Source: Macrostomum lignano (lineage: Eukaryota). From it: a stretch of 64,000 nucleotides of DNA. The stretch spans positions 1 to 64,000 of the forward strand of contig NIVC01003726.1 of NCBI GenBank assembly GCA_002269645.1, written 5' to 3'. Of this stretch, positions 3,657 to 63,906 are shown one piece after another; position 1 is the first letter of the stretch; every line of letters begins with the position of its first letter. The notes below the pieces were generated by a model. The model saw nothing but the letters and a program-made list of their open reading frames with translations. It had not been told where the DNA came from and ran no database searches. A program made the position numbers and the translations under genes.

Positions 3657-3734
<78 letters not shown>

Positions 3735-3735
3735 G

Positions 3736-3788
<53 letters not shown>

Positions 3789-3824
3789 TAGTGTCTGTCT
3801 GTCTGTCTGTCAGTCTGTCTGTCG

Positions 3825-3877
<53 letters not shown>
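3657..3877 (+). repeat. (GTCT)n microsatellite
   Basis: Direct inspection. Confidence 0.97.
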
Positions 3878-3879
<2 letters not shown>

Positions 3880-4605
3880 CTTGAATCTGTCTGGATGCCT
3901 GTCTCAGAGTCAGTCTGCCATCTTAGGCTAAGCAGTCAATAATTCATAAACCCCTCTCGCTTCTCAGCGACTCTCAACGGGCGCAGAGATGCTGTGAATT
4001 TCCAGGAAAATCGGGACGGTTGTGAATCTTTACTGAATTTTTAATAATTCCTCAAAGACAGACTTCAAGAATCGGATTTGCTATGCGCAACCCCCCCTCA
4101 AAAACCAGATGACATGCGTAAGCGTCCTGGACTCAGATTTTCAGACAGTCAGAAGGCGGCGAGAGGAACATCAGCAACTCGAATTTCGTGCCCAAGTCCC
4201 GCCGCTGGGCTGCTCACGCAGGCAGAATTCTGTTGACAGAAAAACAACAGAGATGAAAGCAGAGACTGGTGCAGGGGGCAGCCGGGGGCTCGAAACTGGA
4301 ATAGTGAATTATTAGCTGAAGGAGGAAGCTGGGAGTTGCTGAGATGCCAGCCAAGAAGCCTGCGCACTTGACTCCGCTGTTCAGGCGGGTGCTTTATGGA
4401 AACCGACAAGCGACGGTTGATGCATGGGCAAACAAGCATAGCAGCCTGTTCTACTACTCCATTCGGACAATTCGCCACTTAGTAAAACTCTACGGCTTCA
4501 TCCGGGTTTCCGTCTGGGCTTTCTCTCCTCCTCTGGTTTGCCCTTCCTGTGCTCACATTTTATGTTTCTGTTCATCTCCCCTCTCACTCTCTCCCCATCT
4601 AGCGC

Positions 4606-7600: not shown

Positions 7601-8042
7601 TCTCCCTGTCTCTCTCCCTGTCTCCCTGTCTCTCTCCCAGTTTCCCAGTCTCTCTCTCTCCCTGTCTCTCTCCCTGTCTCCCTGTCTCTCTCCCTGTCTC
7701 CCTGTCTCTCTCTCCCTGTCTCCCTGTCTGTCTCCCTGTCTCTCTCCCAGTCTCCCTGTCTCTCTCCCAGTCTCCCAGTCTCTCTCTCCCAGTTTCCCAG
7801 TCTCTCTCTCTCCCTGTCTCTCTCCTTGTCTCCCTGTCTCTCTCCCAGTTTCCCAGTCTCTCTCTCCCTGTCTCTCTCCCTGTCTCCCTGTCTCTCTTCC
7901 AGTCTCCCTGTCTCTCTCCCAGTCTCCCAGTCTCTCTCTCCCAGTCTCCCAGTCTCTCTCTCCCTGTCTCTCTCCCTGTCTCTCTCCCTGTCTCCCTGTC
8001 TCTCTCCCTGTCTCTCTGTCTCTCTCTCCCTGTCTCCCTGTC
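4606..8042 (+). repeat. 3.4-kb polypyrimidine array with internal higher-order duplication
   Basis: (CTCTCTCTCCCTGT)n with unit-length variants; rare variants (CTACATC, CCCTGACT) recur in blocks. Confidence 0.97.
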
Positions 8043-8912
8043 TATATCCCTCTCTTTGTCTAGCTTTGCCATTCTCTCTCCGCCTCCCTCTCTGGCCATC
8101 ACTCCTCCCCAACTTAGTTCACTGCTTCATCTGTCAAAACGCAGTTTTCTGACCGCTTGGTATTCTCAACGGCCGCCTTCTGCTCCTTGAGATCCCTCTG
8201 CCATGCGTTTGAACTTTGGAGTGAAATAAGAGCCTCTTCATCAATCGCTACCCGCCCTTTCTTAGATATCCACCACACCTTGTTCTTTATCAAGTTCCCT
8301 TTCCTCTCTCTGTGCGATTTTTCCGCCAACATTTTCCGCTCCTTGAGATGAAGTCAGCCAGGCTTTCAGTTGAACAAGCATTGAAATTTTTTAAGCGAAG
8401 ACGCCCCCTGTTCTCAAGCCCGGCACTCAGTTCCGCTCTCTGCCTCATCCATCATCTCCATCAATATGAGCTCCCAATCACCTCTCCCAGGCCGGGGCCA
8501 AACAGCAACCTGCCGTAGAAACTGCTGGATTTTTTCTTTCCAGTCCCAGAATAACACGGGACGCCCGGCTTTGGCTTATGGACACAGGTGGCCAGTTCAC
8601 AGGTCCTGGGAATGGCAGAGTGCTTGCGGGTAGCCCTGAGCTGCTCCGCTGGGTGTTTTAGGAAGTTCTCAGCCTCAGATGAGCAGCCATATGCAATTTT
8701 TCAATGCATTTCCTATTGCTGCTCAAAATTCAATTATACAGTGGCTGGCAGAGCCGTGGCAAAAAATGTGCTCACCACTTCATCAACTGCGAAAGTGCCA
8801 AATTGATTACAGTAGGAAGCTTTCGAAGTGCAGGCATGGCTGCAATAAATTTTTTTAAATTCATTCATAAAACAATACTGAAATATTGAAACGCCTTGCT
8901 GTACGGGAGAGG

Positions 8913-9301
<389 letters not shown>

Positions 9302-9336
9302 TTAAACAGAGCTGCAGTCCAGTCCCAACCAATCAC

Positions 9337-10692
9337 ATGCTCGATTTGCCAGACCGGGTCGCCATGTCCACCACGGCCTCCGCCCCGGTGTCGCTGATGA
9401 CGCGCTACCCGCACCTGATGCAGCTGTACGGCAGGTTCATCCCGAACTTCCTCCTATTCGACCGGGTGGTGACCCCGCTGTGGTACATCCTCGGCTTGTT
9501 CGGCAACAGCCTCAGCGCGTACGTCTGGCTGAACCCGGAAGTTCGGCGCAACAACTCCTCGGCGGTGTACCTGGCTGCCCTGTCGATCTGGGATCTAGTG
9601 TTCCTGGTGCTGCACACGTTTCAAGAGCTGCGCGAAGCGTGGAACATCGCCATGGAGAATGTGATCATGTGCATGGTGCTGCCTGTGGTGCTGCTCACCG
9701 CCCAGTACCTGTCGCCGATCCTCGTGCTGGGCTTCACCGTGGAGCGCTGGATCTCGATTTGCTTTCCATTCAAGCGCGAGTCGCTGTGCAGCACCCGCCG
9801 CGCCTACACCGTCATCGGCTTCATGACCGCCGGCGTGATCGTGTGGAACTTGGCCCAGCTCAACTTCAAGGAGTTCGAGCATGGCGCATGCGTGGTGCGC
9901 AGCGAAGGCTGGCTCTGGCTGGTGTACACCCTCACTACCGAGATTGTCATCAGCGGCCTCGTGCCCGTGACCGCTCTGGTCTTCAACCTGCTGGTGATTC
10001 ACGAGATGTACAAGATCGCAGTGAACCGGGGCAGCAACCGGCAGAACCAGTGCGAAGGCGGCCCCGGAGGCGGCAGCGGAGAGGACAGCGGCGGCGGCGA
10101 GGGCCGGTTCATGTCCAGCACGATCATGCTGCTCAGCGTGTCCTTCTTCGTCATCCTGACCTCTCTGCCGGCCGGCCTGGTCTACGGCCTGCAGACCTTC
10201 GCCGGCTACGGCAGCCAGAACCTCACGGACGCTGAGGTGCTGCTGGACCCCGCCTGGAGGCGCCACTTCGCCATGGCGCGGGTGAAGAAAGTGATTGACG
10301 AGATTTCCATCTCGCATTACTCGCTGAACTTTCTGATCTACCTGGCCACAGGGGCGCAGTACAGGCGGCAGGTGGCGCTGCTGTTCGCCAGGACCCGGGG
10401 TTCCGTCGTCGGCGGCTGCAGTGGCTGCGGCAGCGCCGCCGCCTCCTCCGCCGCGGCTGGGGCCGGATCCGCCAGCGGCGACGCGATGCTGAGAAACGAC
10501 AATGGGAAACGGCGGCGTACTGAGGATTTCTACCTGAGCAACAGCCGAACCAACAGGGCCACTCGGCGAGGCGGCGGCAGCAGCGGCAATGACGGAGGCG
10601 ACACCTGCGCAGCAAATCGAGCGGTTGGAATGTCGGAGGGCGAGGAAAACGGGAAAGCCGTGGAAAAACCGCTTCTGGCTACTTATATTTGA
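9337..10692 (+). CDS. Intronless rhodopsin-class (class A) GPCR, FMRFamide/sex-peptide-receptor-like invertebrate peptide receptor, about 451 aa
   Basis: The real coding part of ORF 8896..10692 starts at ATG 9337; upstream is (GACA)n. Seven hydrophobic segments with GN (TM1), YLAALSIWD (TM2), ERWISICFPF (DRY-equivalent), TM5 Pro, TSLPAG (TM6) and HYSLNFLIY (NFxIY variant of NPxxY), then a Gly/Ala-rich C-tail. Confidence 0.92.
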   Translation: MLDLPDRVAMSTTASAPVSLMTRYPHLMQLYGRFIPNFLLFDRVVTPLWYILGLFGNSLSAYVWLNPEVRRNNSSAVYLAALSIWDLVFLVLHTFQELREAWNIAMENVIMCMVLPVVLLTAQYLSPILVLGFTVERWISICFPFKRESLCSTRRAYTVIGFMTAGVIVWNLAQLNFKEFEHGACVVRSEGWLWLVYTLTTEIVISGLVPVTALVFNLLVIHEMYKIAVNRGSNRQNQCEGGPGGGSGEDSGGGEGRFMSSTIMLLSVSFFVILTSLPAGLVYGLQTFAGYGSQNLTDAEVLLDPAWRRHFAMARVKKVIDEISISHYSLNFLIYLATGAQYRRQVALLFARTRGSVVGGCSGCGSAAASSAAAGAGSASGDAMLRNDNGKRRRTEDFYLSNSRTNRATRRGGGSSGNDGGDTCAANRAVGMSEGEENGKAVEKPLLATYI

Positions 10693-37805: not shown

Positions 37806-38485
37806 CTTAGACCCTGACACCATAGCAGCCATGCCATTCGGGTTGTTAATTAACAGAGATGTTTAGCAAAGGCACCAACACACTCATACAATGATGAAGC
37901 CAATCACTGCAAAAGGCTAAGTGGTTTCATCTGTATACATCTGCTTTTTCCCCTCATTAATGCCTCATCACGAGAGTTGGGCAAACAACCATAGCCCTTA
38001 GCTTTCATAGTTGCTGCTTTTGCAATAATTTAGCACTGCGCAATGCAAAATACCACAGGATCTATTTTGAGCAGAGCGTGTGAGCAGCTCATCTGGTCCA
38101 CCAGATTGCCTAAGGATTAAATGACTGCTCATGTCTGTCGAGAACTTGAGAAGATTGACAAGAAGCATGAGCTAATGGCAGTAAGAGTCATTTTTAGGGA
38201 GAAATTTTCGGGGTGGGTCCTTTATTCCCTCTCGCTTCTCTACTCGGCTTTCTCAATCCCATTTTCTTTCTCTCTTCTCGACAACTCGAGTCTTCCTGTT
38301 GCTTTCTCTCCTCCCTGTCTGCTTTTCTCCAGCATAAGTGCGTTCCCAGTTGCCTCTTCCTGCGAACCACAGAGCGCTGCCTCCCGCCACTTCCTTTCTC
38401 TGTGTGCTGCTTCATTTTAGGGACTTTTGCCCCTTGATGATGGGCATCACTTACTGCATGGAGCTCTCTGACTGTCTCGGCTGCT

Positions 38486-40562
<2,077 letters not shown>

Positions 40563-43500
40563 CGGCAGTGTACCCACTGTGCCTTGGGCGTTGTCACCTT
40601 GCACAAGCCGCAAACCAATTTCTGTACACAAGTTTTGCAGATGCCAAAAACTCATTATCTCCTACTTTAATAAGTAGTGTACGCATACTCTCCTGCACCC
40701 TCGCAAGACATCAGTCCCCTGCCGTTCATGAACCCGGCCTTGGTGCGCAAGGCGGTCAGTCAGCAGCAGTTCATCGGCGGCATCGTCCTGCCGCTGTCCC
40801 TCGCTCTCGCCCGCGTGCTGCCGCGCACCGAGACGGACATTGTGCAGCCGGTCAAACGCCAGCTGGAGTTCTACACTCGCCTGGTTGAGGATGAAGAACG
40901 GGAAGCTGCTGTCGCTGAAGAGGATTGACGCAGATGAGGATAATAGCGGCGCTGGTCAGGCATAGCAAAATGGTTGTTTTTTGCATGCTTAAGACTGGCG
41001 AAGTTAGTACGCAGATACTTTATTATTAACGATTGCGTTAAATTTTGTATTAAAATCTAAATCCAATTCAAATTGGCGCGAATGAGGAACGGGTTTTTTT
41101 AAACGGCGGTTAAAACGTCTAAAAAAATCAACAAGTTATTGTAAAACACAGCAATGCGAATTGATTGTCTGCAGAGGAACAAAAGCTTAGGAACTCCTTA
41201 AAATTCATAATAATGAATATAAGACCGTTGTTGGACACCATGGCACGATGCAGAGACAACATGGGGGGTCGGTGTTTTAACCTTTAACCAACCTTTAATA
41301 TAGTATTTAAAGGTTTTCTTAGATTTTGTCTCTCTTTGGCACCAATTTGAATTTGATTTAAATTTAAAGATTTGAATTAGAGTAAAATGATAGAAGTTAA
41401 ACTACAAAATCATTCCAAAATTAACTAATTTCAGTTTTACATCTCCACTATATCCTACGAGTATTCTGTGTGTTTTGTTTTTGCCTCCTATCAGATATCT
41501 TGCTAAATTATTTTTCGACAAGTTTGATATCAAGTTACGAGTAGTTTCGCTTATTCAGGGGTTGGCATTTTTTTACCTCGATGGCCAGGTAAAGAATACA
41601 GCTCATGGCCAGATGAGAGAGGAAAGGAGAGGGAATAGAGCAGAGAGAAGAGGAAAGGGGAGATTAGAGGAGATGACGATGAGAGAAGAGATGAGGTGAG
41701 AGATAAAGGAGAGAGAGGACATATGACATAGGATAAGAGAGGAGAGGAGATGAGAGAGGAGAAAAGAGAGCTGAGAAGAGACACAAACCTTGAGCAGGCC
41801 GGATTCATTAGTGAAGTTTTAAAGAATCCGAGAGCCGGAAAAAGAGGCTTCGTTGCATTTTGCCGGACTTTCCGGGTTGATCGGGTTCTGTAATAAAAAC
41901 TGTGATTTTTGTTTGTTGCTTTAAAACCTTGTCTGCGTTCTCTTTACGAGCTTTGTCATTCGATATTCATCTGTCAAATGTGTCTCGCATATTTCTATAC
42001 AATATTCTCTATTATTTTACATGTAATTTGTGTTTTTATTATTCTTATCAGGTTGCTGTGATACAATGACTGCTCTCAGTTAAAATTTTCCATTTCGCCT
42101 TGCTTGACCTTGACCAATGCATATGAGCGTTGGAATTTGGCTGCGTTGGAATTTGGCTGCGTTGGAATTTGGCTTGTTTCATTTAGACTTATTTATATAA
42201 CAGATTTTAGACTGACTTTTAAATATCGAACTTATGCAATATTAACGGCCACTAATATTATTTAATGACATGATCGAAGTAAAATATCAATGACATTTGT
42301 GAATTTTCAGCTAAATGTGCAAAAGCTGACTTTTGAAATCGTTTTAAATACACTTAATGTCTGACATTTCTATAGCGATTTTTGCTGACATGCTTACTGC
42401 TTGAGCTGTCGTGAAATTATCCGGGTCCCGCATTGTCCTCCAAATGTCTTTAATTAATAGAGGCCCACGACTTGCCAGAGGTTCCGGGATCATTGCAATG
42501 CTTATACTTTTACGAGTAGTATCTGGATGTTCTCACGCTTGTCCCAGACCCAGACTAAAACTGGAAATATCTACCTCAACACCAAGGATCACTAGAAGAA
42601 GTGGTCTTCTAGTGGTCCTTGCTCAACACATTTTTAAATGTGTTTTTCAAAAGCAGCAATTTTTCTGAGTCTCGAATGTAGCAACACGGTTATATCAGAA
42701 AATAGGCTACGAACAATTTATTAAAACTAACTTTCTTATTGAAGGAATCTGCGCTATTTTTGTTTTAATGTATGTTTTAACGATTTTAAAATACAAATCA
42801 CTTAGATTTTTGTGCTGATATATAATAATGTTTGTGTGCCGATTTAATGACAATTAATTAAACTTAGGTTTTATATAATAATATATATGTTAATACAATT
42901 TTGATTTAAATTTCAGCATCACTGCTCTCTTCTGTTTGAGTTCTCCGCTGTAAGCCATTGGTAGTTGGTACTGATGTTGCTAGAGACGTAGAGAGGACCA
43001 CTTGTCTTCTTGACCACTTCGGCATCGGCACTTGTCTTACCTTAAAACTAGGCCAGTAAGGCCAAGGGCACACATAGGATAGTGCCCCTTTGCCTGGAAA
43101 TTCTGGCGCACAGAAACCTTCACAGGTCAATACTTTAGCACATGTGGCACATATAGTGTAAATGTGAAGATAGTTTAAAAGCATTTAGCTATAATAAATA
43201 AAAAGTTGCCCTAGGCCTAGCCTATAGCAAGTTGGAAAAGGATTAAATAGTGAAGACTCAAGGAATATATTTGGTACTAGGCCTACTTGAATACCAAATA
43301 GAGGAATGTTATCATTATATTGACTATAAACTTAATTTTTTGTTTTATCAATAATTATAATTGCAATACAAGCTTTATTAACAAGTTGTAAACTTAGTTA
43401 GCTTTATTAAAAATTTTATATGCAATTAATAATAAAAGTTTTTATTACCAAAAGGATAGATATTTGTAGAAAAAGTAAAAAATCATATATCAAAGTCTCT

Positions 43501-47190: not shown

Positions 47191-49625
47191 ATGTCTCGCT
47201 ATCGCTACGCCAACGATCTGGATCTTGAGCCAGACGATATTGATGATGATGACGAAGAATTCGTTCTAGAACATCGAGTTGGCCTGACAGCATCGGCTGC
47301 TACTGCCAGTGGCGGAACTAATAGCGATGTTGGTCGCTACCAGCTCACAGAAGAGGATGAAGAACAGCTGCTGGGCAGCGATGCGGAGTCTTGCGACGGA
47401 ACGGCTGCTCCGGCTGCAACTGCCCAGCTGATAGGCAGTCTTAATAGCGTCGACAACGACAATAGTAATACTAATAATAATAATAGTAACCAAACTGAAA
47501 GCAGCGATAATAATGATAATAATAATGCCGACGGAGTCGATCTACACGACGAAGACGATCCCGACGCTATTGTTGTCGGCGTTGATATCGACGACGACGA
47601 TGTCGATGATCTGTTGCAACTCTCCGCTAGCGAAGACGATATTGACGACGAAGCGCCTGCCGCCCAGCCTGCCGCTGCTCGGTCGCCCATTGCCGTCAAG
47701 CGGAAAGCATCCTCGCCGATGCCGCCGCCGACTGCCCCGCCTCAGCCAGCGGTATCAGTCGCCAACGTCAGCATCGGCAGCAGCTCCAAGGCTTCAATAA
47801 TTAATTCACCCGAATTACTGACTAAAAACGGCATAGTAACCATCAAGCGTCCAGAATTGCCAAAGCCGCTTGCACACAGTCAGCAGTCGAGTTCGTCTGC
47901 CAGCGCTCAGCTACCAGTAGACGATGACTACGAGCGACGCTACGAAGAATTAAAAGAGAAGCAAGCTCGAATCCGGCGCATGATACAGAATAAGAAAGAG
48001 CAGAATAGGCTGGCTCGGGTTGGAGCGGCTGCTCCTAAGCCTCAGCAGCCTCAGGCTCAGCCACCGCAGGCGCCTCAGCAGCGGCAGAATCAGATTCGAC
48101 CTTCAACTGGTCCCGCTGGTCCCCGCGCTGGAATAGCGGCCCGGGCGCCAATAGCCGCTGTTCCGACAAAGCCTTTGATGCAGCAGCAGCAGCAGAGGCC
48201 TGTGCGACCTCCATTTGTACCGCCGCAGCAGCAGCGGCCATTTGTTCAAAGAGCCGCTCCGGCCGCAACCAGTCTGCTGCAGCAGCAGCATCGCGGCCAG
48301 CTGCCCCGACAGGCTCCAATCAATTCGCTGTTTAACAATCACCAGCTCAGGCAGCCGATGCCCAACCAGCAGCAGCAACTGTTCATGCCGGCCTTCTCAA
48401 TGTCATCGATTACATCATCGGTTGTCGCCAATGTTGTCGCTTCCGCCGTGTCAGCCGGCGTTGCTCACGGTCGTCGGTCTGTTCGCATCGCCAACTGTCC
48501 GCCTGGCACCGGGCCTAACGATTTAAAAGTCTATACTGAGCTGGTGGGGCCTGTGCAGGTACGCATGGTTGAGTTCTTGTGCTGCTGTCTCTTGTTTTCT
48601 GTGCTTCAAAGTGTGCTGAGTAGTTAATGGGGTGGCTAAGAGCGTAGCCGAGTGTCTATTAATGTAGCTTAAGGGGTAGCTAAGTGTCTATAATGTAGCT
48701 GAAGGGGTAGCTGAGTGTCTATAGATGTAGCTAAAGGGGTAGCTGAGTGTCTATAGATGTAGCTGAAGGGGTAGCTGAGTGTCTATTAATGTAGCTGAAG
48801 GGGTAGTTGAGTGTCTATAGATGTAGCTGAAGGGGTAGCTGAGTGTCTATAGATGTAGCTGAAGAGGTAGCTGAGTGTCTATAGATGTAGCTAAAGGGGT
48901 AGCTGAGTGTCTATAGATGTAGCTGAAGGGGTAGCTGAGTGTCTATAGATGTAGCTGAAGGGGTAGCTGAGTATCTATTGATGTAGCTGAAGGGGTAGCT
49001 GAGTGTCTATAGATGTAGCTGAAGGGGTAGCTGAGTGTCTATAGATGTAGCTTAAGGGATAGCTGAGTGTCTATAGATGTAGCTGAAGGGGTAGCTGAGT
49101 GTCTATAGATGTAGCTGAAGGGGTAGCTGAGTGTCTATAGATGTAGCTGAAGGGGTAGCTGAGTGTCTATAGATGTAGCTGAAGGGGTAGCTGAGTGTCT
49201 ATAGATGTAGCTGAAGGGGTAGCTGAGTGTCTATAGATGTAGCTTAAGGGATAGCTGAGTGTCTATAGATGTAGCTGAAGGGGTAGCTGAGTGTCTATAG
49301 ATGTAGCTGAAGGGGTAGCTGAGTCGGACTGTCTACCTCTGAGGTGCGCGCCTGCACACCGGACTGAAACTGGGCCAGTTACTAACTAAGCTAAGCCTCC
49401 GAAACCCTCAGAACTGCCAAGTGTACCCCAACAATGGCCAGGCTTACATCACATTCTGCTATCCTGAGCATGCGCAAGAGTTTCTTCAGAGATTCAATCG
49501 GTAATTGATGAGAATATTTATATTTGTTCTCTCAAAGATTGCATTGTACTTACAAATTTCATTACTCCTTTGTTTCTTTCAGAGCGCACCTGAAAGGCTA
49601 CCAACTGCAGCTGACCCTATGCTAA
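47191..49625 (+). CDS. RBM33: RBM33-like RNA-binding protein: acidic N-terminus, coiled coil, Q/P-rich region and C-terminal RRM, 499 aa
   Basis: Exons 47191-48558, 49412-49500 and 49583-49625. The C-terminal RRM SVRIANCPPGT...VGPVQNCQVYPNNGQAYITFCYPEHAQEFLQRFNRAHLKGYQLQLTLC and the overall architecture resemble RBM33. The gene model is solid; orthology is less certain. Confidence 0.8.
48650..49325 (+). repeat. 32-bp intronic minisatellite
   Basis: (GTAGCTGAGTGTCTATAGATGTAGCTGAAGGG)n. Confidence 0.95.
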
Positions 49626-50214
49626 ATAATTAACTTATTTCATCTGAACCATTTGCTTATTGTCCTGATTTGTTTTAATCAACTCTTTATCCTGTTTTGC
49701 TATAAATAACGTTTTGTTAATTTCTTTTCAAACACAATCTTCCCTAGTCTTGGTGTTCAGTGACTGAGCCGCGATTAATATATAATATTATATATTTTAC
49801 ATGTAAAATACTCATTTTCTTTCCAGGAAATTAAGAGAACAAAAAATTCTGGAAAAACTAAATAGAAAACAAATCAACTTTAACAGAAGTACATCGCATA
49901 AAAGTACTTTCTTTTGCTGTTGTATCGCGTGTCGCTCTGTCTAAATATTTGTCAGTTTCTGCTAAAGTTCCAAAATTTCTTATGTGCCGCTTTCAGTAGC
50001 TTGTGTGCGAATAAAGGCGTTTTTTGCTTGCTGTTATCCGTTTGAAGCCATCATCTAATTTGCATATAGCTGGTCTCAATAATAATTTAAACTACTGGTA
50101 AATGTTATTTGTTTTAATGATACTTTTAAACGTAGGTTTTTATAGGGAGTTTGTAGGTTTCTATAGGACTGAAATTTGGCGTTTGGCTGTCTTGTTAGTA
50201 ATTTCTTGGGGTAT

Positions 50215-52476
50215 TGTCTGGTTGTAAAGTAGGGAATTATCTGGTTGTAAACTGGGGAATTATCAGGTTGTAAACCGGGTAATTATTTGGTTGTAAACTG
50301 GGGAATTTATCTGGTTGTAAAGTAGGGAATTATCGGGTTGTAAACTGGGGAATTATCAGGTTGTAAACCGGGTAATTATTTGGTTGTAATCTGGGGAATT
50401 TATCTGGTTGTAAACAGGGGAATTATCGGGTTATAAACTGGGGAATTATCAGGTTGTAAACCGGGTAATTATTTGGTTGTAAACTGGGGAATTATCAGGT
50501 TGTAAACCGGGTAATTATTTGGTTGTAATCTGGGGAATTTATCTGGTTGTAAACAGGGGAATTATCGGGTTATAAACTGGGGAATTATCAGGTTGTAAAC
50601 CGGGTAATTATTTGGTTGTAAACTGGGGAATTATCGGGTTGTAATCTGGGGAATTATCAGTTTGTAAACCGGGTAATTATCTGGTTGTAAACAGGGGAAT
50701 TATCTGGTTGTAAACTGGGGAATTATCAGGTTGTAAACCGGGGAATTATCAGGTTGTAAACCGGGGAATTATCTGGTTGTAAACAGGGAAATTATCTGGT
50801 TGTAAACAGGGGAATTATCTGGTTGTAAAGTGGGTAATTATCGGGTTGTAAACAGGGTAATTGTCTGATTGTAAACTGGGTAATTTTCTGATTGTAAACT
50901 GGGTAATTTTCTGATTGTAAACTGGGTAATTTTCTGATTGTAAACTGGGTAATTGTCTGATTGTAAACTGGGTAATTGTCTGATTGTAAACTGGGTAATT
51001 GTCTGATTGTAAACTGGGTAATTGTCTGATTGTAAACTGGGTAATTGTCTGATTGTAAACTGGGTAATTGTCTGATTGTAAACTGGGTAATTGTCTGATT
51101 GTAAACTGGGTAATTTTCTGATTGTAAACTGGGTAATTTTCTGATTGTAAACTGGGTAATTTTCTGATTGTAAACTGGGTAATTTTCTGATTGTAAACTG
51201 GGTAATTTTCTGATTGTAAACTGGGTAATTTTCTGGTTGTAAGCTGGTGAATTGTGTATTTGTAAAATAAACAATTTTCCTGTTAACCTGTTCTAAAAGT
51301 TTGCTCAGATAGTTAATCATATTCCTACCCAACTTTTTATTGGCATTGTTTAGGTCCAACTTTTTTAAAATCATCGCTCACTATTAGCTGCTTTTAGTAG
51401 TATGATAAACTGTCTTTAACTTGTTTAATCAGCAATATTTTCCTGTACTTTTATTTAGTATGTATTTTTCATTCAATACTGTGCATTTTAACAAGCAGTT
51501 TTTATAGGCTTTTGTAGGCTTCTATAGGACTAAAATTTGTCTCTTGGTTGTGAGAGTGGCGTTTGGCTGTCTTGTTAGTAATTTCCTGTGGAATTGTCTG
51601 GCTGTAAACTGGAATCATCTAATTGTAAACTGGGGAATCGTCTGGTTTAAAACTGGGGAATTATCAAGCTGTAGACTGGGCAATTATCGGGTTGTAAACC
51701 GGGGAATTATCGGGCTGTAAACCGGCGGGGAATTATCGGGTTGTAAACCGGGGAATCGTCTGGCTGTAAGCTGGGGAATTATCTGGTTGTAAACCGGGGA
51801 ATTATCGGGTTGTAAACCGGGGAAGGATCGGGTTGTAAACGAGGGAATTATCGGGTTGTAAGCGAGGGAATTATCGGGTTGTAAACCGGGGAATTATCGG
51901 GTTGTAAAACGGGGAATTATCGGGTTGTAAACCGGGGAATTATCGGGCTGTAAACCGGCGGGGAATTATCGGGTTGTAAACCGGGGAATTATCGGGTTGT
52001 AAACCGGGGAATTATCGGGCTGTAAACCGGCGGGGAATTATCGGGTTGTAAACCGGGGAATCGTCTGGCTGTAAGCTGGGGAATTATCTGGTTGTAAACC
52101 GGGGAATTATCGGGTTGTAAACCGGGGAAGGATCGGGTTGTAAACGAGGGAATTATCGGGTTGTAAACCGGGGAAGGATCGGGTTGTAAACGAGGGAATT
52201 ATCGGGTTGTAAAACGGGGAATTATCGGGTTGTAAACCGGGGAATTATCGGGTTGTAAACCGGCGGGGAATTATCGGGTTGTAAACCGGGGAATTATCGG
52301 GTTGTAAACCGGGGAATTATCGGGTTGTAAACCGGGGAATTATTGGGTTGTAAACCGGGGAATTATCGGGTTGTAAACCGGGGAATTATCGGGTTGTAAA
52401 CCGGGGAATTATCGGGTTGTAAACCGGCGGGGAATTATCGGGTTGTAAACCGGGGAATTATCGGGTTGTAAACCGG
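50215..52476 (+). repeat. Two related approximately 21-23-bp arrays (50215-51245 and 51595-52476) inside a tandem duplication
   Basis: GGTTGTAAAC(T/C)GGG(G)AATT(A/G)TC units; the unique flanks are also duplicated. Confidence 0.9.
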
Positions 52477-53024
52477 GGGATGTTAAGCTGTTCAGAAGTT
52501 TACACAAATGCTTCTACCCTTGAATTTTATTGATATTACTTTTTTCTACTGTAAGATTTTTAATTATGCTGCAAATTATCGTCACTCACTACCAGCTGTT
52601 TTCAGTAGTATGAAAACCTGTCTTTAACATGTCAAATCAGCAATATTTTCCTGTACTCACGAGCTTATAATCTGGCATGCATTTTTCATTTAATCCTCCT
52701 GTGCATTTTGAACAGCAATTTTTTTCAAGTTCGCTGCATTTCTCTTATTTTTTCTTAAGTTTCCCGTTTTCAGGTTCTCTTTTAGGTCCGGCCGAGCTGT
52801 ACTGATCCTGACCCAACGGCCCACTGACAGGCTGAAGGTAGGTCATTCTTTATTTATTCATTTTTTTACTAGTAAATGTATTAATAAATAATAGCTAATA
52901 TTATTTTTTTAGGCTCTTATGTGCGAATCGGAAATTATTATAGGACATTCTATCCTGTTCTGCAATGCGAGCGCGCCTCTGTGTGCTTTGTAAGTAACCG
53001 ATTTTTATTTCAATTGGGCTCACA

Positions 53025-54535
53025 CTTCTCTACCTGACCCTGAGAATCTCACTTTTCTCTTCTACCTGATCCTGAGAATCTCACTCCTCTCACTTCTACC
53101 TGACCCTGAGAATCTCACTTTTCTCTTCTACCTGATCCTGAGAATCTCACCTCTCACTTCTACCCGACCCTGAGAATCTCACTTTTCTCTTCTACCTGAT
53201 CCTGTGAATCTCACTCCTCTCACTTCTACCTGACCCTGAGAATCTCACTCCTCTCACTTCTACCTGACCCTGAGAATCTCACTTTTCTCTTCTACCTGAC
53301 CCTGAGAATCTCACTCCTCTCACTTCTACCTGACCCTGAGAATCTCACTTTTCTCTTCTACCTGATCCTGAGAATCTCACCTCTCACTTCTACCTGACCC
53401 TGAGAATCTCACTTTTCTCTTCTACCTGATCCTGAGAATCTCACCTCTCACTTCTACCTGACCCTGAGAATCTCACTTTTCTCTTCTACCTAACCCTGAG
53501 AATCTCACCTCTCACTTCTACCTGACCCTGAGAATCTCACTTTTCTCTTCTACCTAACCCTGACAATCTCACTCTGCCCTTCTACCTGACCCTGAGAATC
53601 CCACCCCTCTCTTCTACCTGACCCCGAGAATCTCACCCTTCTTCATCGATCCGCCAGCTATTATCGTCAACAGTTTTATTACTTTCTCATATTTCAGGTG
53701 GCCACATCAAAGTAAAAATATTCGTTCGAATTCGATCGGCAACCGTGGAAGGTTTGCGACACGGCAGCTTAATTAGCAAGTGTTTGTTTACGGCTGAGCT
53801 TCATCAGGGACACTTCTAGAATAAGGCTGGGATTAGATACTAGGGACATAGGCTACATTGCTGTTGCGTGCTGCCTTGGCTAGTCAAAGGCTAACATGTA
53901 GCAGCATTTTTTAGTGCTCGTATTACCCGTATTAAAATCTATTTTATATGTGCTTTAAAATTAAAATAGGTGCTTTTCTCACCCTTCATTTATTTTATTA
54001 CGTCTATCTCATCCCTCATCTTTTTTACAGTGTCTATCTCATCTCCCATCTATTCTATGGGTGTCAATATCATCTCTTATCTACTCTATGGTGTCTTTCT
54101 CATCCCTCATCTACTCTATGGTGTCTTTCTCATCCCTCATCTACTCTATGGTGTCTTTATCATCCCTCATCTACTCTATGGTGTCTTTATCATCCCTCAT
54201 CTATTCTACGGTGTCTATCTCATTTCTCATCTATTCTATGGTGTCTATCTCATCTCTCATCTATTCTATGGTGTCAATCTTATTCCTAATCTATTTTATG
54301 GTGTCCATATCAGCTAATCTATTATATGGTGTCTATCTCATCCTTCATCTATTCCATGGTGTCTATCTCAGCTAATCTATTCTATGGTGTCTATCTTAGC
54401 TCATCTATTCTGTGGTGTCTATCTCAGCTCATCTATTCTATGGTGTCTAGCTCGCCTCTCATCTATTCTGTGGTAGCTCGTATCAAGCTATCCCTCATCT
54501 ATTCTAAGGTGTTTATCTCACCTCTCACAGCTGTT
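53025..54535 (+). repeat. About 32-35-bp (53025-53640) and 30-bp (53985-54535) minisatellites
   Basis: TTCTACCTGACCCTGAGAATCTCAC.. and CTCATCTACTCTATGGTGTCTTTCTCATCC units. Confidence 0.9.
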
Positions 54536-55483
54536 CTGTGCCTATCCGGCCAGTCGTCCATTCTAAGGTTTTATGTTCCTGTTATATGCATTGCTGATAC
54601 ATCATGCCAAGTTGTTATCTCGCACACGAATTAGCATCATTTTTTGGCCGTTTATTGACGGTGCTTGACATTCTGTCATTCAATGATCTCCGCTGTCTCG
54701 GGCATCATTGCTTTAGTAGCAATAAGCATTTGCTCAGCTGTTACTGTACTATTTTTGTTTAGGCAACAACAGCAAAGAATGCACAATATTCTTTGTAAAT
54801 ATCAGGTACACAATCTTAAGCATTTCTAATTTTTGTACTGAAGCAATACATGAAATGCAAATAAATACACAGATACGAAATATTGAGGCTCAAACTTTGT
54901 TTTGATAAAAATAACTCATATCGATTTTGAAAGCAAAACAAAAATCTTATGGCAGCTTTCTTCGCATTTCTTCCATCCTTTAAATAAGCTTCAACAGTTT
55001 GATGCGCTCAAACTACTTACATGTACATGCATAAGTAGGCATGCGGAGTATGAGCTTAGTTAAGTAATTTACTATTAAAATCTGAACGATACAAGGAGCT
55101 TAAGCAGCCGACTCCAGCAATATTGAGTATATTGGCAGCAATAAATTCATCAAAAAAACTTTTCGAATCGCCTGCCGTTATCTGCCTGCTCTCTGGTCAC
55201 GTTTTCAAAGCAACAAAAAGCACAGTTGCTGCCCCCGTTAATTAAATCGAACTGTCAGCAGGTAGCACACAGGCCTGCAGAAGTTGGTATCTTTGAAGCC
55301 GCTTGCAGCAAATATTGGCTCAGACATCTCTCGCATCGGTCCGTGCTCCAGCTGTTTGCGCTGAGACGCGGCTATTTAAGACAGCTCGCCATATTGCAAA
55401 GCTGCTCTGCACCTGCCTTCAGCGCTTAGCCTTTGTGTCACAGTTGCATCGCTTCCAACCAACAGATTCGCTACAGCGCAGTT

Positions 55484-56659
55484 ATGAACCCGCTGACAAT
55501 CTTGACCTTGACGCTGGTGTCTCTGGGAGCCGCGGTCGTTGCCACTCCGATGCCGCCCGTTCAGTCGTCCATGACTGACGGGGCCAACAAGCTGCAACGG
55601 TGATAGACTGAAACTTTGTTTTCATGGACTACGGGTTATTGCGTTTCTTAGAATTCATTGACTACGGGGCATTGCGTTTCTTAGAATTCATTGACTACGG
55701 GGCATTGCGTTTCTTAGAATTCATTGACAGTGGGGTATTGCTTTTCTTAAAAAAAGAAAAAACTTAACTAATTCGTCTTTTCTAAAAATTGCTGCAAAAG
55801 TTACTATTTTACGAGCTATTTCAACAAAATCAGTGTAGTATCCTTTGCTACATTAATAACAAAAGCACGTTTATAATAAAATGGCAATATTTAACATCCG
55901 CAGCAACAATGCCGCCTTGTATCGGAATCTTCTGCTGCGAACTCGCGACGCTTTGCACACAATCAACGTGGCCGATAAGTAATTTGCTAGCTTGAAATAT
56001 CTGAAACATCTTGCATAAATATACGTAATTTAATGTGTGCCTAACTTAATCTATTGCAGAGATCTGCACAAACTGGCCAACCTACTGGTGCAGGCCCTGT
56101 CTCTGAAGCAGGGCATCAGGCGGCAGGTCACGGCTCTGCGGTAAGCATTTAATAGGCATCTGTGCATCGCTAAGAAGCTGGGTCCGTGTAGCTTGGCGGT
56201 CTAGCGGGTCGCTTGTTTGTTCGAAAGGTTGTGGGTTCGAATCCCATGAATCAAAATAAAAAAAATTCTAAAGATGCTTAATGTATAAACAAGCGGTCTA
56301 GCGTGTCTCCCTTCTATGCCGAAGGTCCTGGGTTCGATTTCAAACTCGCCAAATTTAATAAGAAGCATCATCGAGAAAGCCGCGGGGTTGCTAGCTCTTC
56401 TGTGACTAAGGTCCGGGCTTCGATTTCATTCTTTCAGTTAAACTTAGCGAAAAACTTCATTGGGAAAGTTTGGCTGTTCGGAAGGTCGCGGGTTCGATTT
56501 CCATATGGGAAAAATACAAAGAATCCCCAACCTACGCACGGCAGCAAGCGGGCCTGCGGTGTCCTGGACCTCGGCGGTCATTGCGACGCTGAGTATGGCG
56601 CCGAGCTGCTGGACCAGATCAACCACATGCTGAAGCCCGGCGGCCCGGGACGCCGGTGA
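55484..56659 (+). CDS. Calcitonin-type neuropeptide precursor, 103 aa, 3 coding exons
   Basis: Exons 55484-55599, 56060-56140 and 56545-56659 give MNPLTILTLTLVSLGAAVVA (signal-peptide-like), a propeptide, KR, ACGVLDLGGHCDAEYGAELLDQINHMLKPGGP, then G-RR-stop. Confidence 0.85.
55626..55745 (+). repeat. 33-bp repeat, about 3.5 copies, in neuropeptide intron 1
   Basis: GACTACGGGGCATTGCGTTTCTTAGAATTCATT. Confidence 0.85.
56181..56510 (+). repeat. Four degenerate tRNA-like (B-box-bearing) units in tandem within neuropeptide intron 2
   Basis: Recurring AAGGT..GG(G/C)TTCGA(A/T)T(C/T)C at about 56225, 56322, 56410 and 56485; GCGGTCTAGCG in units 1 and 2. Confidence 0.6.
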
Positions 56660-57316
56660 AGTTAAAGTTGAAGCGATGATGCAAATAAAATCGGTTGCAA
56701 AATATTTTGACCTTCAAGATCAATGAATCATAGAAGTTTGAGCGAATAAAAATTTTAACTAAATAAGCGAACTTCGTAGCATTGAAGCATATACCGACCG
56801 ATATATTTTCCTTTCTTTGCTACAAAACAATAATTTTTCGATATTGCTACTTGGCAGTAAAGAAGTCCGCATATTACGAGCGTATTTTCACAGTTTTCGC
56901 CAGAATCCAGAAGCTGGGATTTCAACAGGCTCAGTCAGACAGCCGCGGCCAAGTGGTTAATTTTCAGATATCGGCCAATCTGACGGCATGAGTGGAGCCA
57001 TGAATAGTCGATGAAGACGCGCTGGCTGGAAGCGAGGCGTTGCACCGCAGCATCAGGCGAATCTCTCCATCACTTGAGAACTCATTTCTCTTATCTGCTG
57101 TTTGATGATGGGCAGAGAAGCTGGGCGGCTGAGAACTTTCATGCAGTCAATTTTGGACGACTAAAACTATCCAGCATTCTGCTCTGCGGATCACCCTGAC
57201 ACCAATAAAATGCTGAGATTGGCTCTCCATCGGGAACTGCTGAGCTCGGAGCTCAGATTTGTGCCATGCTGCATCTGCAGCTGATGGAGCTGGGCTGCTG
57301 TGGGCTCTGGGGTTGG

Positions 57317-59440
<2,124 letters not shown>

Positions 59441-59835
59441 AATTTTACTGTCAGGGACAGCCAAAGCTACAGTACAGGGGGCTGAGGTCCTGAGCACACT
59501 TATGCACATGCAGATGTTATTCCACTATGACTCATAGACATTTCCAATCGAAGGTGATTTATGGGCCCAAACAATGTGAAACCGATTGGGTGCAATAAAT
59601 TTAGTCACTCAGTCACTCACTACACACCTTGCAAATCTTTATAAAATACAGAGCCACTGTCAGGCAGAACTTGAGAGGCACTTGCTGTCTCTCAGCCAAT
59701 CAGCTTCGACCTGGTTCCGCCATTGGTCCTCCTTACCCCAGCAGCAGACTTTTCAACTTAAAATGGTCGCGCAGAACAGCTGAGTTTACCTAGAGAATTC
59801 CAGCACTTTAAATTGTTTAGAAGTTAGAATAAAAA

Positions 59836-62800
59836 ATGGCATCATTTCAACAGCTTCTGCTGCTCCTAGCAGCAGCAACAGCAACAGCTGCAGCAATGGT
59901 CGCATCGCCGACACCGTCGGATGTCGTCCTAGACGAGGAGCTGCCACCGGGCAGCCAGCCCGCCGAACTGCGTCAGGCGTTGATTCAGCGCGGCCTGGAC
60001 AGCCCCGGATGCTGCGTCATGATCCCGCCTCATCCGTACTTCGAGTACACCGCCAACGAGGCCGCGGCCCGCGCCGAGCTGACGGTCAAGAAGCGCCTGG
60101 ACCGCGAGTCCATGTGCCCCGAAGCCGGCCTCTGCTGCAGCTCGGCCGAGCTGATCTGCCAGCTCAAGCTGCACTTCCTCGACCGTCGGCAGTCGGGCGC
60201 ACCCCGGGAGATCGTCCTGACCGTCGGGATTCGTGACATCAACGATCACCGGCCCGTCTTCCCGGAGGCCGAGCGCCGGATTCAGGTCAGCGAGGACGCC
60301 CCGCCGGGTCAGCTGGTCCGCCTGCCGCTGGCTTCCGATCCGGACTCCGACTCCAACTCAGTCAGGGACTACTCGCTGCTGCCGAGGGTCGGTGTCTTCG
60401 GCCTGCGCGAGGACCGGGCCGGCTCTGGCAGGGTGACCCATCTGTCACTCGAGCTGCTGGACAGGCTGGACAGGGAGGCCCAGCCGGTGCACAATCTGAC
60501 CCTGGTGAGAGCCACTGCATCACCCACTCCATCACCCATTGCATCACACACTGCATCACCCACTCCATCACTCACTCCATCACCCACCCCACCACTCCAT
60601 CACCCACTCCATCACCCACTCCAGCACCCACTCCATCACCCACTCCATAACCCACCCCACCACTCTATAACCCACCCCACCACTCCATCACCCACTCCAG
60701 CACCCACTCCATCACCCACTCCATAACCCACCCCACCACTCTATAACCCACCCCACCACTCCATCACCCACTCCATCACCCACTCCAGCACCCACTCCAT
60801 CACCCACTCCATAACCCACCCCACCACTCCATCACCCACCCAACCACTCCATAACCCACCCCACCACAACCCACCCCACCGCTCCATCACCCACTCCATC
60901 AGCCACCCCACCACTCCAAAACCCACCCGACCCCACCACAACCCACCCCACCACTCCATCACCCACCCCACCACTTCATCACCCACTCCATCACCCACTC
61001 CATCACCCACTACATCACCCACTTCATCATCCACCCCATCACCCACCCCATCACCCACCCCATCACCCACCCCATCACCTACCCCACCACACGCTCTATA
61101 TCCCCAGGTTGCCACAGACATCGACGGCCAAAACGCCAGCCTCCGCCTCATCGTGAACGTCACGGACGTGAACGACAACCGGCCGCAGTTCCACCCAACC
61201 GGCCACCGGACTGTCCGAGTTCGCGAGTCCGACCCGGCTGGCAACTGTCCGGTCCAGCTGTCGGCCATCGATCCGGACAGTGGCGAGAATGGCCGAGTAA
61301 TCTTCGAGCTGGACCCGCACCAGCCGGACCTGGCCGCGGTCGATGCCAACTTTCGCGTGTCGCCATCGAGCGGCTTCATCTGCCTTCGTCGGAGTCTGGA
61401 CTACGAGACTAAGGAGATCTTCGAACTGTCCGTCATCGCCAGGAATCCCACGCCGATCAGAGGCGACCCTGGAGCTGGCGGAGCTGGCAGCCGGCTGGCG
61501 ACGGCCACCGTGACGGTGCTGGTTGTTGATGAGAATGATGAGGCGCCCCAGCTGCAGCTGGACTATCTGGATGGGACAGCGGAGGTGTGAACTGGATTTG
61601 GGGTCTTCGGTAATCTAAAAAGTCCACAATGAATAAACTGTTACCAATCAGTCGCCAATCAGTCACCAATCAATCACCAATCAGTCACCAATCAGTCACC
61701 AATCAGTCACCAATCAACCACCAATCACCAATAAGTCACCAATCAGTCACCAATCAGTCACCAATCAATCACCAATCAATCACCAATCAGTCACCAATCA
61801 GTTACCAATAACTAATCAGTCACCAATCAGTCACCAATCAGTCATCAATCGATCACCAATAACCAATCAGTCACCAACAAATCAACCCAGGTAACGGAGA
61901 ACGACCGCCGAGGCCACACCTTGGCGGCCCTGCAGGCCACGGACAGGGACCGGGGCGACAACGGCCGGGTGAGCTGCCAGATCGACCAGCCCGACCTGCG
62001 CGACGTCTTCGAGCTTCTGCCCACCGCCGGCTCAGCATCCGCCGGCGCTTCATCCGGTCAGCCGCAGCGCTGGCGATTCTACTTGGGCACCAGAGACGGA
62101 GGTCCCGGACTCGATCGCGAGGCCCACCTGAAACTCGGACCGATGGCGGCTCACCGAGAAGTCGTCCGACTCGACGTAGGCATCGTCTGTCGCGACGGCG
62201 GCCAACCGGCCAATGTCCGGTTCGCCAACGCCTCCGTGCTCATCGGTGACGTCAACGACAATGCGCCAGCGCTGCGGCTGGTCCGGTCTGCCGCTGCCGC
62301 TACAGCAGGCGGCGGTGACAAAGACCTCTTAGCTTCGGCCAGCGTGCCGAGAACCGTCCGCCCGGCTTCCACGTCGCCAAGCTCGACGCTCACGACCTCG
62401 ACTTCGGCGTCAACGGCTCAGTGGCGTTCGCGCTCGATCCGGCTGGCACCGACACTTTGGCGCTGGACGCCTTCGACGTTCGAAGCGATGGCTTGTTGGT
62501 CACCCGACGGACGCTCGATCGAGAGTCGGCGATGCCGCCCATAGACAGCTTCCGGGTAGCCGTGATGGCGCACGACCGGGGCAGCGCCGTCCGGCTCAGC
62601 TCCACCCTGACGCTCCACGTCCGCCTGATCGACGAGAACGACAACGCGCCGGTCATCCTGCCGCTGGCCGGATCTGCGGCGGCGGCCGCCGGCGCCGGGC
62701 TGGAGTTCCGCCTGGCGGAGAACAACAAAGCCGGTGCCGCTGTCGGCCGCCTGCGCGTCGTGGACGCCGACTTCGGACCGGACGAGGCCGACTGGCGACG

Positions 62801-63833
62801 GCGTCGGCGTCGGGTCTCGCTGTCACCGGCGGCGACTTCGAGTTCGACGCCTGGCGGCGGCGCTCGACTGCCGTTTCGAGTGCGGCCGTCGACAGGCCCC
62901 GACCTGGACGAGTTCATCATCGAAGCCACGGACGTGCTGGACGCGGAGCGCCAGGCCGAGTACCGCTTCCTGCTGCTGGCCAGCGACGGTCAGCACTCCT
63001 CCAGCTGCAATGTCACTGTCATCGTCGAGGACGTCAACGACCACCCGCCGAAGATCTTCTATCCTTGCAGCGGCAGCGGCGGCAACCGGAGCTCGAGCTC
63101 CGTCCGCCGCCAGTTGCTGAGGAACCACAGCGTCTCCTGGCGCGAGCCGGTGGGCTACACGGTGCTGAAGGTCAACGCCAACGACGAAGACTTCGACAAG
63201 ACTGGGAACGGCAGGTTCCAGTTCAGTCTGCGGGAGGCCCCGGCCGCCGGACAGTCTGGTGACGCCGTCCGGCCACTGTTCAGCGTCGATCCCGACGGTG
63301 GGCAGATCCGGGTGGCCGCTCGCATGACCGGCCGAGACCGCGGCGTCCGGCGCCTGACGGTGACAGCGACCGACCGAGGACAGCCGCGGCCGCTGGCCAC
63401 CGAGTGCGTCTTCGACGTGACGGTGGACAGCTCGGAGCCGAGAAGCCAAGCAGCCTTGGCGCCGCGTCTCGGCGAAGATGGAGGAGGAAGAGACGGTGGC
63501 GGCGTGTTCACCCAGGTGCCGCCGATGCCACGCCAGAAGCAGCAGTTCGGAGACTCTGTCGTGCTGGCCGTTGTTGGCATTTTCGCGCTGCTGTTGCTAT
63601 TGGCAACGGTGCTGCTGCTGCTGTACGCCAGGCATTGGCACGCGGCGCCGGGCTTCCTGCCAGACGTGCTGGGCGCCTGCTTCGGCAGGAGGGAGCAACG
63701 GAGCCAGGCGGGCCGTGGCGGCGGCGGTGGCCGCGGCCGCAAGTCCGCTGAATCTGCCGAGGCTGCTGGAGCGGCCTTTCTCGGGGTCAAGTCGGGTCAG
63801 CCGGATCAGCTGAGATCCAGGCCGCTCAGTCAG
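59836..63833 (+). CDS. Protocadherin with 7 EC domains (delta1-like), TM and partial cytoplasmic tail; 1-nt frameshift near 62347; continues beyond the window
   Basis: Signal peptide; exons 59836-60504, 61108-61584 and 61891-63833. Repeated DRE/DYE, DxNDNxP and AxDxG motifs; EC1 DRESMC..CC; TM SVVLAVVGIFALLLLLATVLLLLYA; donor CAG|GTTAGT at 63834. Confidence 0.9.

Positions 63834-63906
<73 letters not shown>

Follow-up and report, generated by a model that had tools for sequence, protein, structure and literature searches.

A four-exon gene of the flatworm Macrostomum lignano that probably encodes a calcitonin-type preprohormone

Calcitonin-type signaling dates to the bilaterian ancestor. In nemerteans, brachiopods and phoronids, which are lophotrochozoans, the calcitonin precursor carries the ring C-(x)-x-N-L-G-G-H-C, usually in its final peptide (Thiel et al. 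2021, PMC8557429). The number of residues enclosed by the two ring cysteines is 7-9 in protostome calcitonins and 4-5 in deuterostome ones (Cai 2018), and a 2026 review describes such conserved peptides as lost in many planarians and parasitic flatworms. Here we analyzed a stretch of DNA of 64,000 nucleotides from Macrostomum lignano (the window; positions 1 to 64,000 of the forward strand of contig NIVC01003726.1, assembly GCA_002269645.1). This animal is an early-branching, free-living flatworm and a model for regeneration. We conclude, with a probability of roughly 85%, that the locus at 55484-56659 of the window is a four-exon M. lignano gene for a 128-residue calcitonin-type preprohormone.

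A sequence-only reading of this locus had joined three exons with GT-AG introns, in frame, into a precursor of 103 residues that ends in a 32-residue amidated peptide. We recovered its three exons, both of its introns, its 312-nucleotide open reading frame (ORF) and exactly its 103 residues, but the model lacks a further coding exon at 55904-55978. The features of the gene are as follows, where a slash marks a splice or cleavage point and GC is the fraction of guanine plus cytosine.

55274..55483, + strand: probable 5' untranslated region (UTR) of at least 174-210 nucleotides, through which the 5'-open products of sister copies read in frame
55484..55599, + strand: coding exon 1, which holds the start codon, the predicted signal peptide MNPLTILTLTLVSLGAAVVA/TP and the first part of the propeptide; its donor reads CAACG/gtgata; GC 0.61
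55904..55978, + strand: coding exon 2, 75 nucleotides, in frame, encoding the propeptide segment NNAALYRNLLLRTRDALHTINVADK; boundaries cag/CAACAA...GATAA/gtaatt; GC 0.52
56060..56140, + strand: coding exon 3 (exon 2 of the earlier model), encoding the helical propeptide segment DLHKLANLLVQALSLKQGIRRQVTAL(R)
56545..56659, + strand: coding exon 4, which opens with the one base that ends the Arg codon and continues through Lys-Arg and the peptide to Gly-Arg-Arg-stop
56552..56647, + strand: predicted mature peptide ACGVLDLGGHCDAEYGAELLDQINHMLKPGGP, 32 residues, with a Cys2-Cys11 ring and a Pro-amide formed from the next Gly
56684..56689, + strand: AATAAA polyadenylation signal, 25 nucleotides 3' of the stop codon

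The four exons give a coding sequence of 387 nucleotides, and its 128-residue product is identical to the GenBank entries PAA50059.1 and PAA67779.1, labeled 'hypothetical protein BOX15_Mlig031819g1/g3'. GenBank places the Mlig031819 gene at 55484-56659 of NIVC01003726.1, the very coordinates of the gene in the earlier model, and the contig sequence around it agrees with window positions 49484-62659 at every base. The UniProt entry for a sister product reads 'Conserved secreted protein', with 'hypothetical protein' and 'Uncharacterized protein' as further labels. The suggestion that this gene was unannotated is therefore withdrawn: the gene is annotated but unnamed, and what is new is its identity as calcitonin-type. 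The annotated products were found by an exhaustive profile search, a word-indexed protein search with the 103-residue model having given no match. With the same query, the exhaustive search returned two M. lignano proteins, one of which reads ...KLQR-NNAALYRNLLLRTRDALHTINVADK-DLHKL... and so has 25 residues extra; the exact 103-residue sequence was matched in neither search. We discounted two giant fish proteins described as 'epiplakin-like' (36 residues aligned at 36% identity), attributing these matches to chance or to repeats.

The exon at 55904-55978 is included in 4/4 database products, which come from three gene copies and two annotation sources, and its GC of 0.52 stands against 0.30-0.33 in the introns on either side. 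Across the gene, GC is 52-69% by exon and 30-45% by intron, and GC at third codon positions (GC3) of the coding sequence is 0.77 (about 0.8), like that of a confirmed coding exon elsewhere in the window. When we scanned all six frames of the window for a loose pattern of dibasic site, Cys ring and Pro-Gly-dibasic end, there was a single match, compared with an average of 0.02 in shuffled windows. Upstream, the 5'-open sister products PAA59768.1 (186 residues) and UniRef A0A1I8GFH5 (198 residues) run in frame through 55274-55483, and in the window that frame is interrupted by a stop codon. Because the TATTTAA at 55373 lies within the 5' UTR that these products imply, it does not act as a TATA box for those transcripts, and we dropped it as a candidate.

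The layout of the protein is that expected of a secreted prohormone. At its N-terminus, a hydrophobic core spans residues 4-20 (mean Kyte-Doolittle 1.9-2.5) and is followed by V-V-A/T-P, in which V at -3 and A at -1 fit the -3/-1 rule for signal peptide cleavage, although this is a crude test. R-K-R stands before the peptide and P-G-R-R-stop after it, so that cleavage and amidation are predicted from the sequence. Within the peptide, the hydrophobic moment is highest in ELLDQINHMLK, where it reaches 0.64 and exceeds that of 2000/2000 shuffles (p=0.013 for the paralogue described below). A single-sequence AlphaFold2 model of the precursor, of low confidence (predicted local distance difference test score 61), makes residues 28-98 one helix and places another at 106-120, which are residues 13-27 of the peptide. 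The predicted ring, C-G-V-L-D-L-G-G-H-C, has the spacing C-x8-C in both M. lignano paralogues. The sequence-only reading had described this ring as wider than that of vertebrate calcitonin. With 8 enclosed residues against 5 it is so, but its width is not unusual, because the protostome range of 7-9 includes it.

By analogy with standard prohormone processing, we infer the following steps. The signal peptide (residues 1-20) would route the protein to the secretory pathway, where a prohormone convertase would cut off the largely helical propeptide at Arg-Lys-Arg (residues 91-93). A carboxypeptidase would then trim the C-terminal Arg-Arg, and the exposed Gly would be converted to a C-terminal amide on Pro. 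The product would be ACGVLDLGGHCDAEYGAELLDQINHMLKPGGP-NH2, in which an amphipathic helix comes after a disulfide ring closed between Cys2 and Cys11; the calculated mass of this amidated and oxidized form is 3289.532 Da.

We compared the predicted peptide with known calcitonins using a profile hidden Markov model (HMM) whose only input was eight published calcitonins from nemerteans, brachiopods and phoronids (Thiel et al. 2021 supplement). The sequences searched were 1026 ORF fragments of the window, 3000 composition-matched shuffles and two M. lignano precursors. We found that the exon-4 ORF of the window and the 128-residue protein matched at E=3e-7 (28 bits) and the M. lignano paralogue at E=1e-5, while the best decoy reached 10 bits. 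This comparison, which the sequence-only reading had itself proposed, thus came out on the side of a calcitonin-type peptide. Fixing the scaffold did not account for the match: when KR, both Cys residues and the PG-dibasic end were held in place (n=5000), shuffles averaged 2.6 bits with a maximum of 29.6, and the two M. lignano peptides scored 32.5 and 28.6. Global alignment to the eight lophotrochozoan peptides with Cys and Pro fixed gave z=6.96 and 5.58, and 0/5000 shuffles reached either value. In the joint alignment, the L-G of the ring is invariant, and a Glu three residues past the second Cys is nearly so.

The same profile was run on other members of the family. Ecdysozoan calcitonin-A scored 19-29 bits and the first-position calcitonins of lophotrochozoan precursors 22-39 bits, whereas calcitonin-B, DH31 and vertebrate calcitonin all stayed at or below 8 bits. 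Close family members score about 80 bits and the flatworm peptides 28-32 bits. Given that ecdysozoan calcitonin-A reaches 19-29 bits, the flatworm scores lie within the range of the family. At the level of sequence, these comparisons place the M. lignano peptides in the protostome cysteine-containing calcitonin family as divergent members, whose closest relatives are the nemertean, brachiopod and phoronid peptides that carry a C-x-x-N-L-G-G-H-C ring.

The position of the last intron provides a separate line of evidence. In M. lignano the acceptor reads cggcag/C AAG CGG GCC TGC, which is a phase-2 boundary one nucleotide before the K-R codons. A profile search of a large protein database gave three ORFs with calcitonin exons, and in each of their three non-flatworm contigs an AG acceptor likewise lies one nucleotide before the K-R codons (ttttcttcag/A AAA CGT AAC TGT; ttttatag/G AAG CGG ATG TGC; caccag/G AAG CGG ACG TGC). 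The contigs compared were L003 (JGI 3300040954), L004 (ENA ERZ27262672) and L005, where L005 and L006 correspond to ENA ERZ23498364 and ERZ27279858. The L003 boundary fits published nemertean transcripts (...V-I-K-R-N-C), and the L004 and L005 boundaries were deduced from upstream stop codons. A phase-2 intron at a shared position is independent support for homology. The profile, the shuffles with fixed Cys and Pro and this exon boundary agree, and they bear out the central proposal of the sequence-only reading, namely a secreted precursor of a predicted 32-residue, disulfide-ringed, Pro-amidated peptide of calcitonin type.

The contigs that hold these exons are short and labeled 'metagenome', and we read them as eukaryotic host or contaminant DNA, nemertean-like in one case and annelid- or mollusc-like in others. 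In the M. lignano gene itself, intron 1 contains 3.9 copies of a 33-bp unit, TTCATTGACTACGGGGCATTGCGTTTCTTAGAA, at 91% identity (55621-55749). In its last intron, a unit that ends in GGTTCGA(A/T)T(C/T)C occurs four times, in diverged copies spaced 74-97 bp from one another (56196-56502). This unit resembles the B box, or T-arm, of tRNA and suggests an array like a tRNA-derived short interspersed nuclear element, and ARAGORN found no tRNA in 56196-56502. Further arrays flank the gene: upstream, 17.6 copies of a 30-bp unit (54002-54527), and downstream, about 650 bp of GACA-rich microsatellite (57317-57982).

M. lignano has a second precursor of this type. The paralogue, UniRef A0A1I8FBD4, reads KR-YCGFLDLGGHCDAMHGAELLDQILHLSRPGGP-GKRRKR, and its signal peptide and propeptide are unrelated to those of the 128-residue protein. 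The peptide regions of the two are 72-76% identical, while their propeptides have no visible similarity. Retention of the peptide and both processing sites, with divergence of the remaining precursor, is the usual signature of a bioactive peptide. The public models of the paralogue (A0A1I8FBD4 and A0A1I8F8U6) are poor: one, of 255 residues, continues past GKRRKR into low-complexity sequence, and an 80-residue product, labeled 'Transposase' in UniProt, is without the first half of the ring.

The gene itself also exists in near-identical copies. A duplicate locus at NIVC01001456.1:229473-242648 aligns with window positions 49484-62659 at about 98% identity over 5 kb, and within the gene the two differ at only two sites, both intronic. 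A third gene copy (g2) lies on another contig. Such copies are in keeping with what is known of the M. lignano genome, which is duplicated on a large scale. No homologue from another flatworm appeared in the profile search of the large protein database, a search that relies on shared 5-residue words, so that the lack of a flatworm match says little about absence.

A number of results weigh against a calcitonin assignment. No Pfam family matched the 103-residue model at E<=0.1, the vertebrate calcitonin/CGRP/amylin family included, and HMMs of ecdysozoan calcitonin-A plus mussel, of calcitonin-B and of DH31, made with sequences from Veenstra 2014 and Cardoso 2020, ranked the flatworm peptides no higher than shuffles of matched composition. 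Aligned globally to the calcitonin-A set, the peptides gave z=4.8 and 4.4 against full shuffles, but nearly all of this came from Cys spacing and the terminal Pro; with Cys and Pro fixed, the values fell to z=1.3-1.5, and similarity to calcitonin-A outside this scaffold is not significant (p 0.07-0.13). An anchored column test against calcitonin-A gave p of about 0.12, while every known member passes the same test by leave-one-out. An apparent likeness of the propeptide, and above all of its exon-2 segment, to the ecdysozoan 'L-R-x-L-L-x-x-L-D' spacer was rejected by shuffles (z=0.4, compared with z=3-14 for controls). The M. lignano ring is 1-2 residues longer than the 6-7 of its closest relatives, and the Gly that is usual at five residues from the C-terminus is absent from that position. 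A test for selection on the two genomic copies gave nothing, since they differ at two intronic sites only and near-identical copies carry no information about selection. Finally, a BLAST-based paper reported no homologue of the calcitonin/CGRP receptor in flatworms.

These results leave other explanations to be weighed. Some of them would suit a lineage-specific secreted peptide, disulfide-ringed and amidated, that came to look like a calcitonin by convergence and without homology. Convergence is easy for short peptides, Pfam gave no match, the propeptide is unrecognizable, and similarity with the scaffold fixed is not significant for ecdysozoan calcitonin-A, calcitonin-B, DH31 or deuterostome calcitonin. 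We nevertheless consider convergence decidedly unlikely, given the lophotrochozoan profile match at E=3e-7, the scaffold-fixed z of 7 and flatworm scores inside the family range, together with the L-(D/N)-L-G-G-H-C motif, the post-ring Glu and the intron position and phase that are held in common with calcitonins. A related question is whether this flatworm gene corresponds instead to DH31, or to a calcitonin/DH31 ancestor that had not yet divided, and not to the cysteine-containing paralogue. The peptide shares 'LDLG' and 'GGP-amide' with termite and locust DH31 (GLDLGLSRGF...AGGP), and its z against DH31 with full shuffles is 2.1-2.3. However, DH31 is defined by the absence of both Cys residues, of which the M. 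lignano peptide has two, and with Cys and Pro fixed the z drops to 1.1-1.2. A DH31 HMM gave no match, and the calcitonin profile scored 8 bits on DH31, although two DH31 sequences make this a weak test. We regard a DH31 identity as very unlikely. Calcitonin-B fits no better: its HMM gave no match, z with Cys and Pro fixed was -0.9 to -1.0, and the M. lignano precursor holds a single copy, whereas arthropod calcitonin-B, marked by a C-x7-C ring with W/F-D-D/E and then N-G...G-A/S-G...D-D, usually has several copies per precursor.

Two further alternatives concern the gene product more than its family. The 103-residue protein, made by skipping 55904-55978, could be the main product or a regulated alternative isoform that releases the same peptide from a shorter propeptide. 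Since the 75-nucleotide exon is divisible by 3, the three-exon version is in frame too, and this exon has the lowest GC of the four (0.52) and a weak polypyrimidine tract. In addition, alternative splicing of calcitonin genes occurs in vertebrates, arthropods and echinoderms, and two phoronid isoforms with a common N-terminus seem to be a further case. Set against this, all four database products include the exon and neither protein search matched the 103-residue sequence, so that we think it unlikely that skipping yields the main or a regulated product. Nowhere in the window did we find another calcitonin-like exon that might be used as an alternative. It could also be supposed that annotation produced a spurious gene model, or that the gene is a duplicate that is not expressed, and that no peptide is made, given that the M. 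lignano genome is highly duplicated and that the sister models are messy (the 'Transposase' label and the 255-residue run-on). Yet there are at least three near-identical copies with an intact ORF, and the diverged paralogue keeps the peptide and its processing sites exactly. The coding-type GC3, clean splice sites and poly(A) signal, and the resemblance of the 5'-open sister products to translated transcripts, point the same way, and we judge an artefact extremely improbable. A four-exon gene for a calcitonin-type preprohormone is thus the reading that we prefer.

How might such a peptide signal? By analogy with the calcitonin/DH31 systems whose receptors are known, it would be released from neurons or endocrine cells and would activate a secretin-class (family B) G protein-coupled receptor (GPCR), of the calcitonin/DH31 type or possibly of the PDF type, with a rise in cyclic AMP. 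Receptors of the calcitonin/DH31 type have been deorphanized in oyster, Platynereis, Drosophila and sea cucumber; for the oyster calcitonins, which belong to the same group of phyla as the nemertean, brachiopod and phoronid ones, papers citing Schwartz et al. 2019 describe them as secretin-class. Calcitonin-type peptides also activate PDF-type receptors in both fly and sea cucumber, which makes a PDF-type receptor a live alternative. The literature on family-B receptors of flatworms is sparse and mixed: Schmidtea has 20 secretin-family GPCRs, and the sole secretin-class receptor of Fasciola is PDF-receptor-like. It is conceivable, though we hold it to be fairly unlikely, that flatworms kept a calcitonin peptide but lost, or never had, a classical calcitonin receptor, the peptide then acting on a family-B receptor of the PDF type or on some other non-canonical one. 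Such a state would fit the BLAST negative, the PDF-like receptor of Fasciola and the activation of PDF receptors in fly and sea cucumber.

The window contains one GPCR of its own. An intronless-looking ORF at 8896-10692 (+ strand) encodes a divergent rhodopsin-class receptor (Pfam 7tm_1, E=2e-13), whose best matches among solved structures, all weak, are the neuromedin-U, QRFP and TRH receptors (E about 1e-6). It is probably an orphan peptide-type receptor and not of the secretin class. Elsewhere, a 3.4-kb satellite at 4605-8036 consists of about 246 copies of the 14-bp unit CCCTGTCTCTCTCT, and a (GTCT)n run lies at 3657-3879; together, these explain a 1012-residue 'ORF' at 4344-7382 and the extreme GC and AT skew there. 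A phosphodiesterase-9A-like catalytic exon (+ strand, 39538-40677 within 38338-40677) matches M. lignano A0A1I8GGX6 at 100% identity. In the GC-rich (0.61-0.65) end of the window, ORFs with cadherin repeats occupy 59836-63842 (+ strand).

Neither the M. lignano gene nor Mlig031819 is named in any paper that we found, and the planarian prohormone supplements of Collins 2010 contain no matching motif. The species in Figure 2 of Thiel 2018, which has a calcitonin panel and a neuropeptide Y/F panel, include M. lignano in one panel or the other. The sequence-only reading had called these peptides poorly documented in flatworms. That description needs qualifying, since a precursor from the polyclad Prostheceraeus crozieri had already been reported (Piovani et al. 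2023, PMC10396302), but this was the only earlier flatworm report that we found. The M. lignano gene is an unsurprising addition to a known hormone family, and a useful one for the study of flatworm neuroendocrinology. Together with its diverged paralogue, it offers an anchor sequence for searches in other flatworm lineages, a defined target for mass spectrometry and for assays of receptors, and a way into the question of the family-B receptor. Its identity also corrects the public labels, which are 'hypothetical protein', 'Uncharacterized protein' and, on one copy of the paralogue, 'Transposase'.

Vertebrate calcitonin, like the M. lignano peptide, has 32 residues, an N-terminal disulfide ring and, at the C-terminus, an amidated Pro, but its ring encloses 5 residues and not 8. 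No sequence similarity to vertebrate calcitonin was detected, either as a Pfam match or on the lophotrochozoan profile, where the human and salmon peptides score 0-2.5 bits. RAMP accessory proteins, for their part, are not known in protostomes. DH31, which acts through a family-B receptor, resembles the M. lignano peptide in its length of about 31-32 residues, N-terminal LDLG, GGP-amide and amphipathic helix; of the conserved DH31 core GLDLG...AAKHLMGLAAANYAGGP-amide, however, the flatworm peptide has LDLG and GGP alone. Within its own phylum, the likeness to the P. crozieri precursor is one of family, by the assignment reported for that species. P. crozieri belongs to the Polycladida and M. 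lignano to the Macrostomorpha, and expression of the polyclad precursor is reported from a cluster of neurons in the larva.

Ecdysozoan calcitonin-A (Veenstra 2014, PMC4237046) matches the M. lignano precursor more closely in plan. Both have one C-terminal peptide per precursor, and both run from a signal peptide through a helical spacer and KR to an 8-9-residue ring, 'C-D', about 21 residues and P-G with basic residues. The termite calcitonin-A transcript has three coding exons, a number comparable to that in M. lignano. The two differ at the C-terminus, where calcitonin-A ends in (D/N)SP-amide and the flatworm peptide in GGP-amide. The mussel CALCIa peptide has the same layout as the M. lignano peptide, A-C-x8-C-x21, and the same 32 residues.

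The nemertean, brachiopod and phoronid calcitonins differ from the flatworm peptide in several respects. They enclose 6-7 residues in the ring where M. lignano encloses 8, and they end in SP-amide instead of GGP-amide. The C-terminal half has diverged, reading ...LLDQINHMLKPGGP in M. lignano and ...ADMYHYLNSAESP in the lophotrochozoan peptides, and many trochozoan precursors hold two to four calcitonin peptides, compared with one in M. lignano. Despite these differences, the two groups have in common the preceding KR, the PG with basic residues, the ring L-(D/N)-L-G-G-H-C, the Glu three residues after the ring and the spacing of 21 residues between the second Cys and the Pro-amide. In both, the peptide is C-terminal and follows a helical, Leu-rich spacer, and in both a phase-2 intron stands before K-R.

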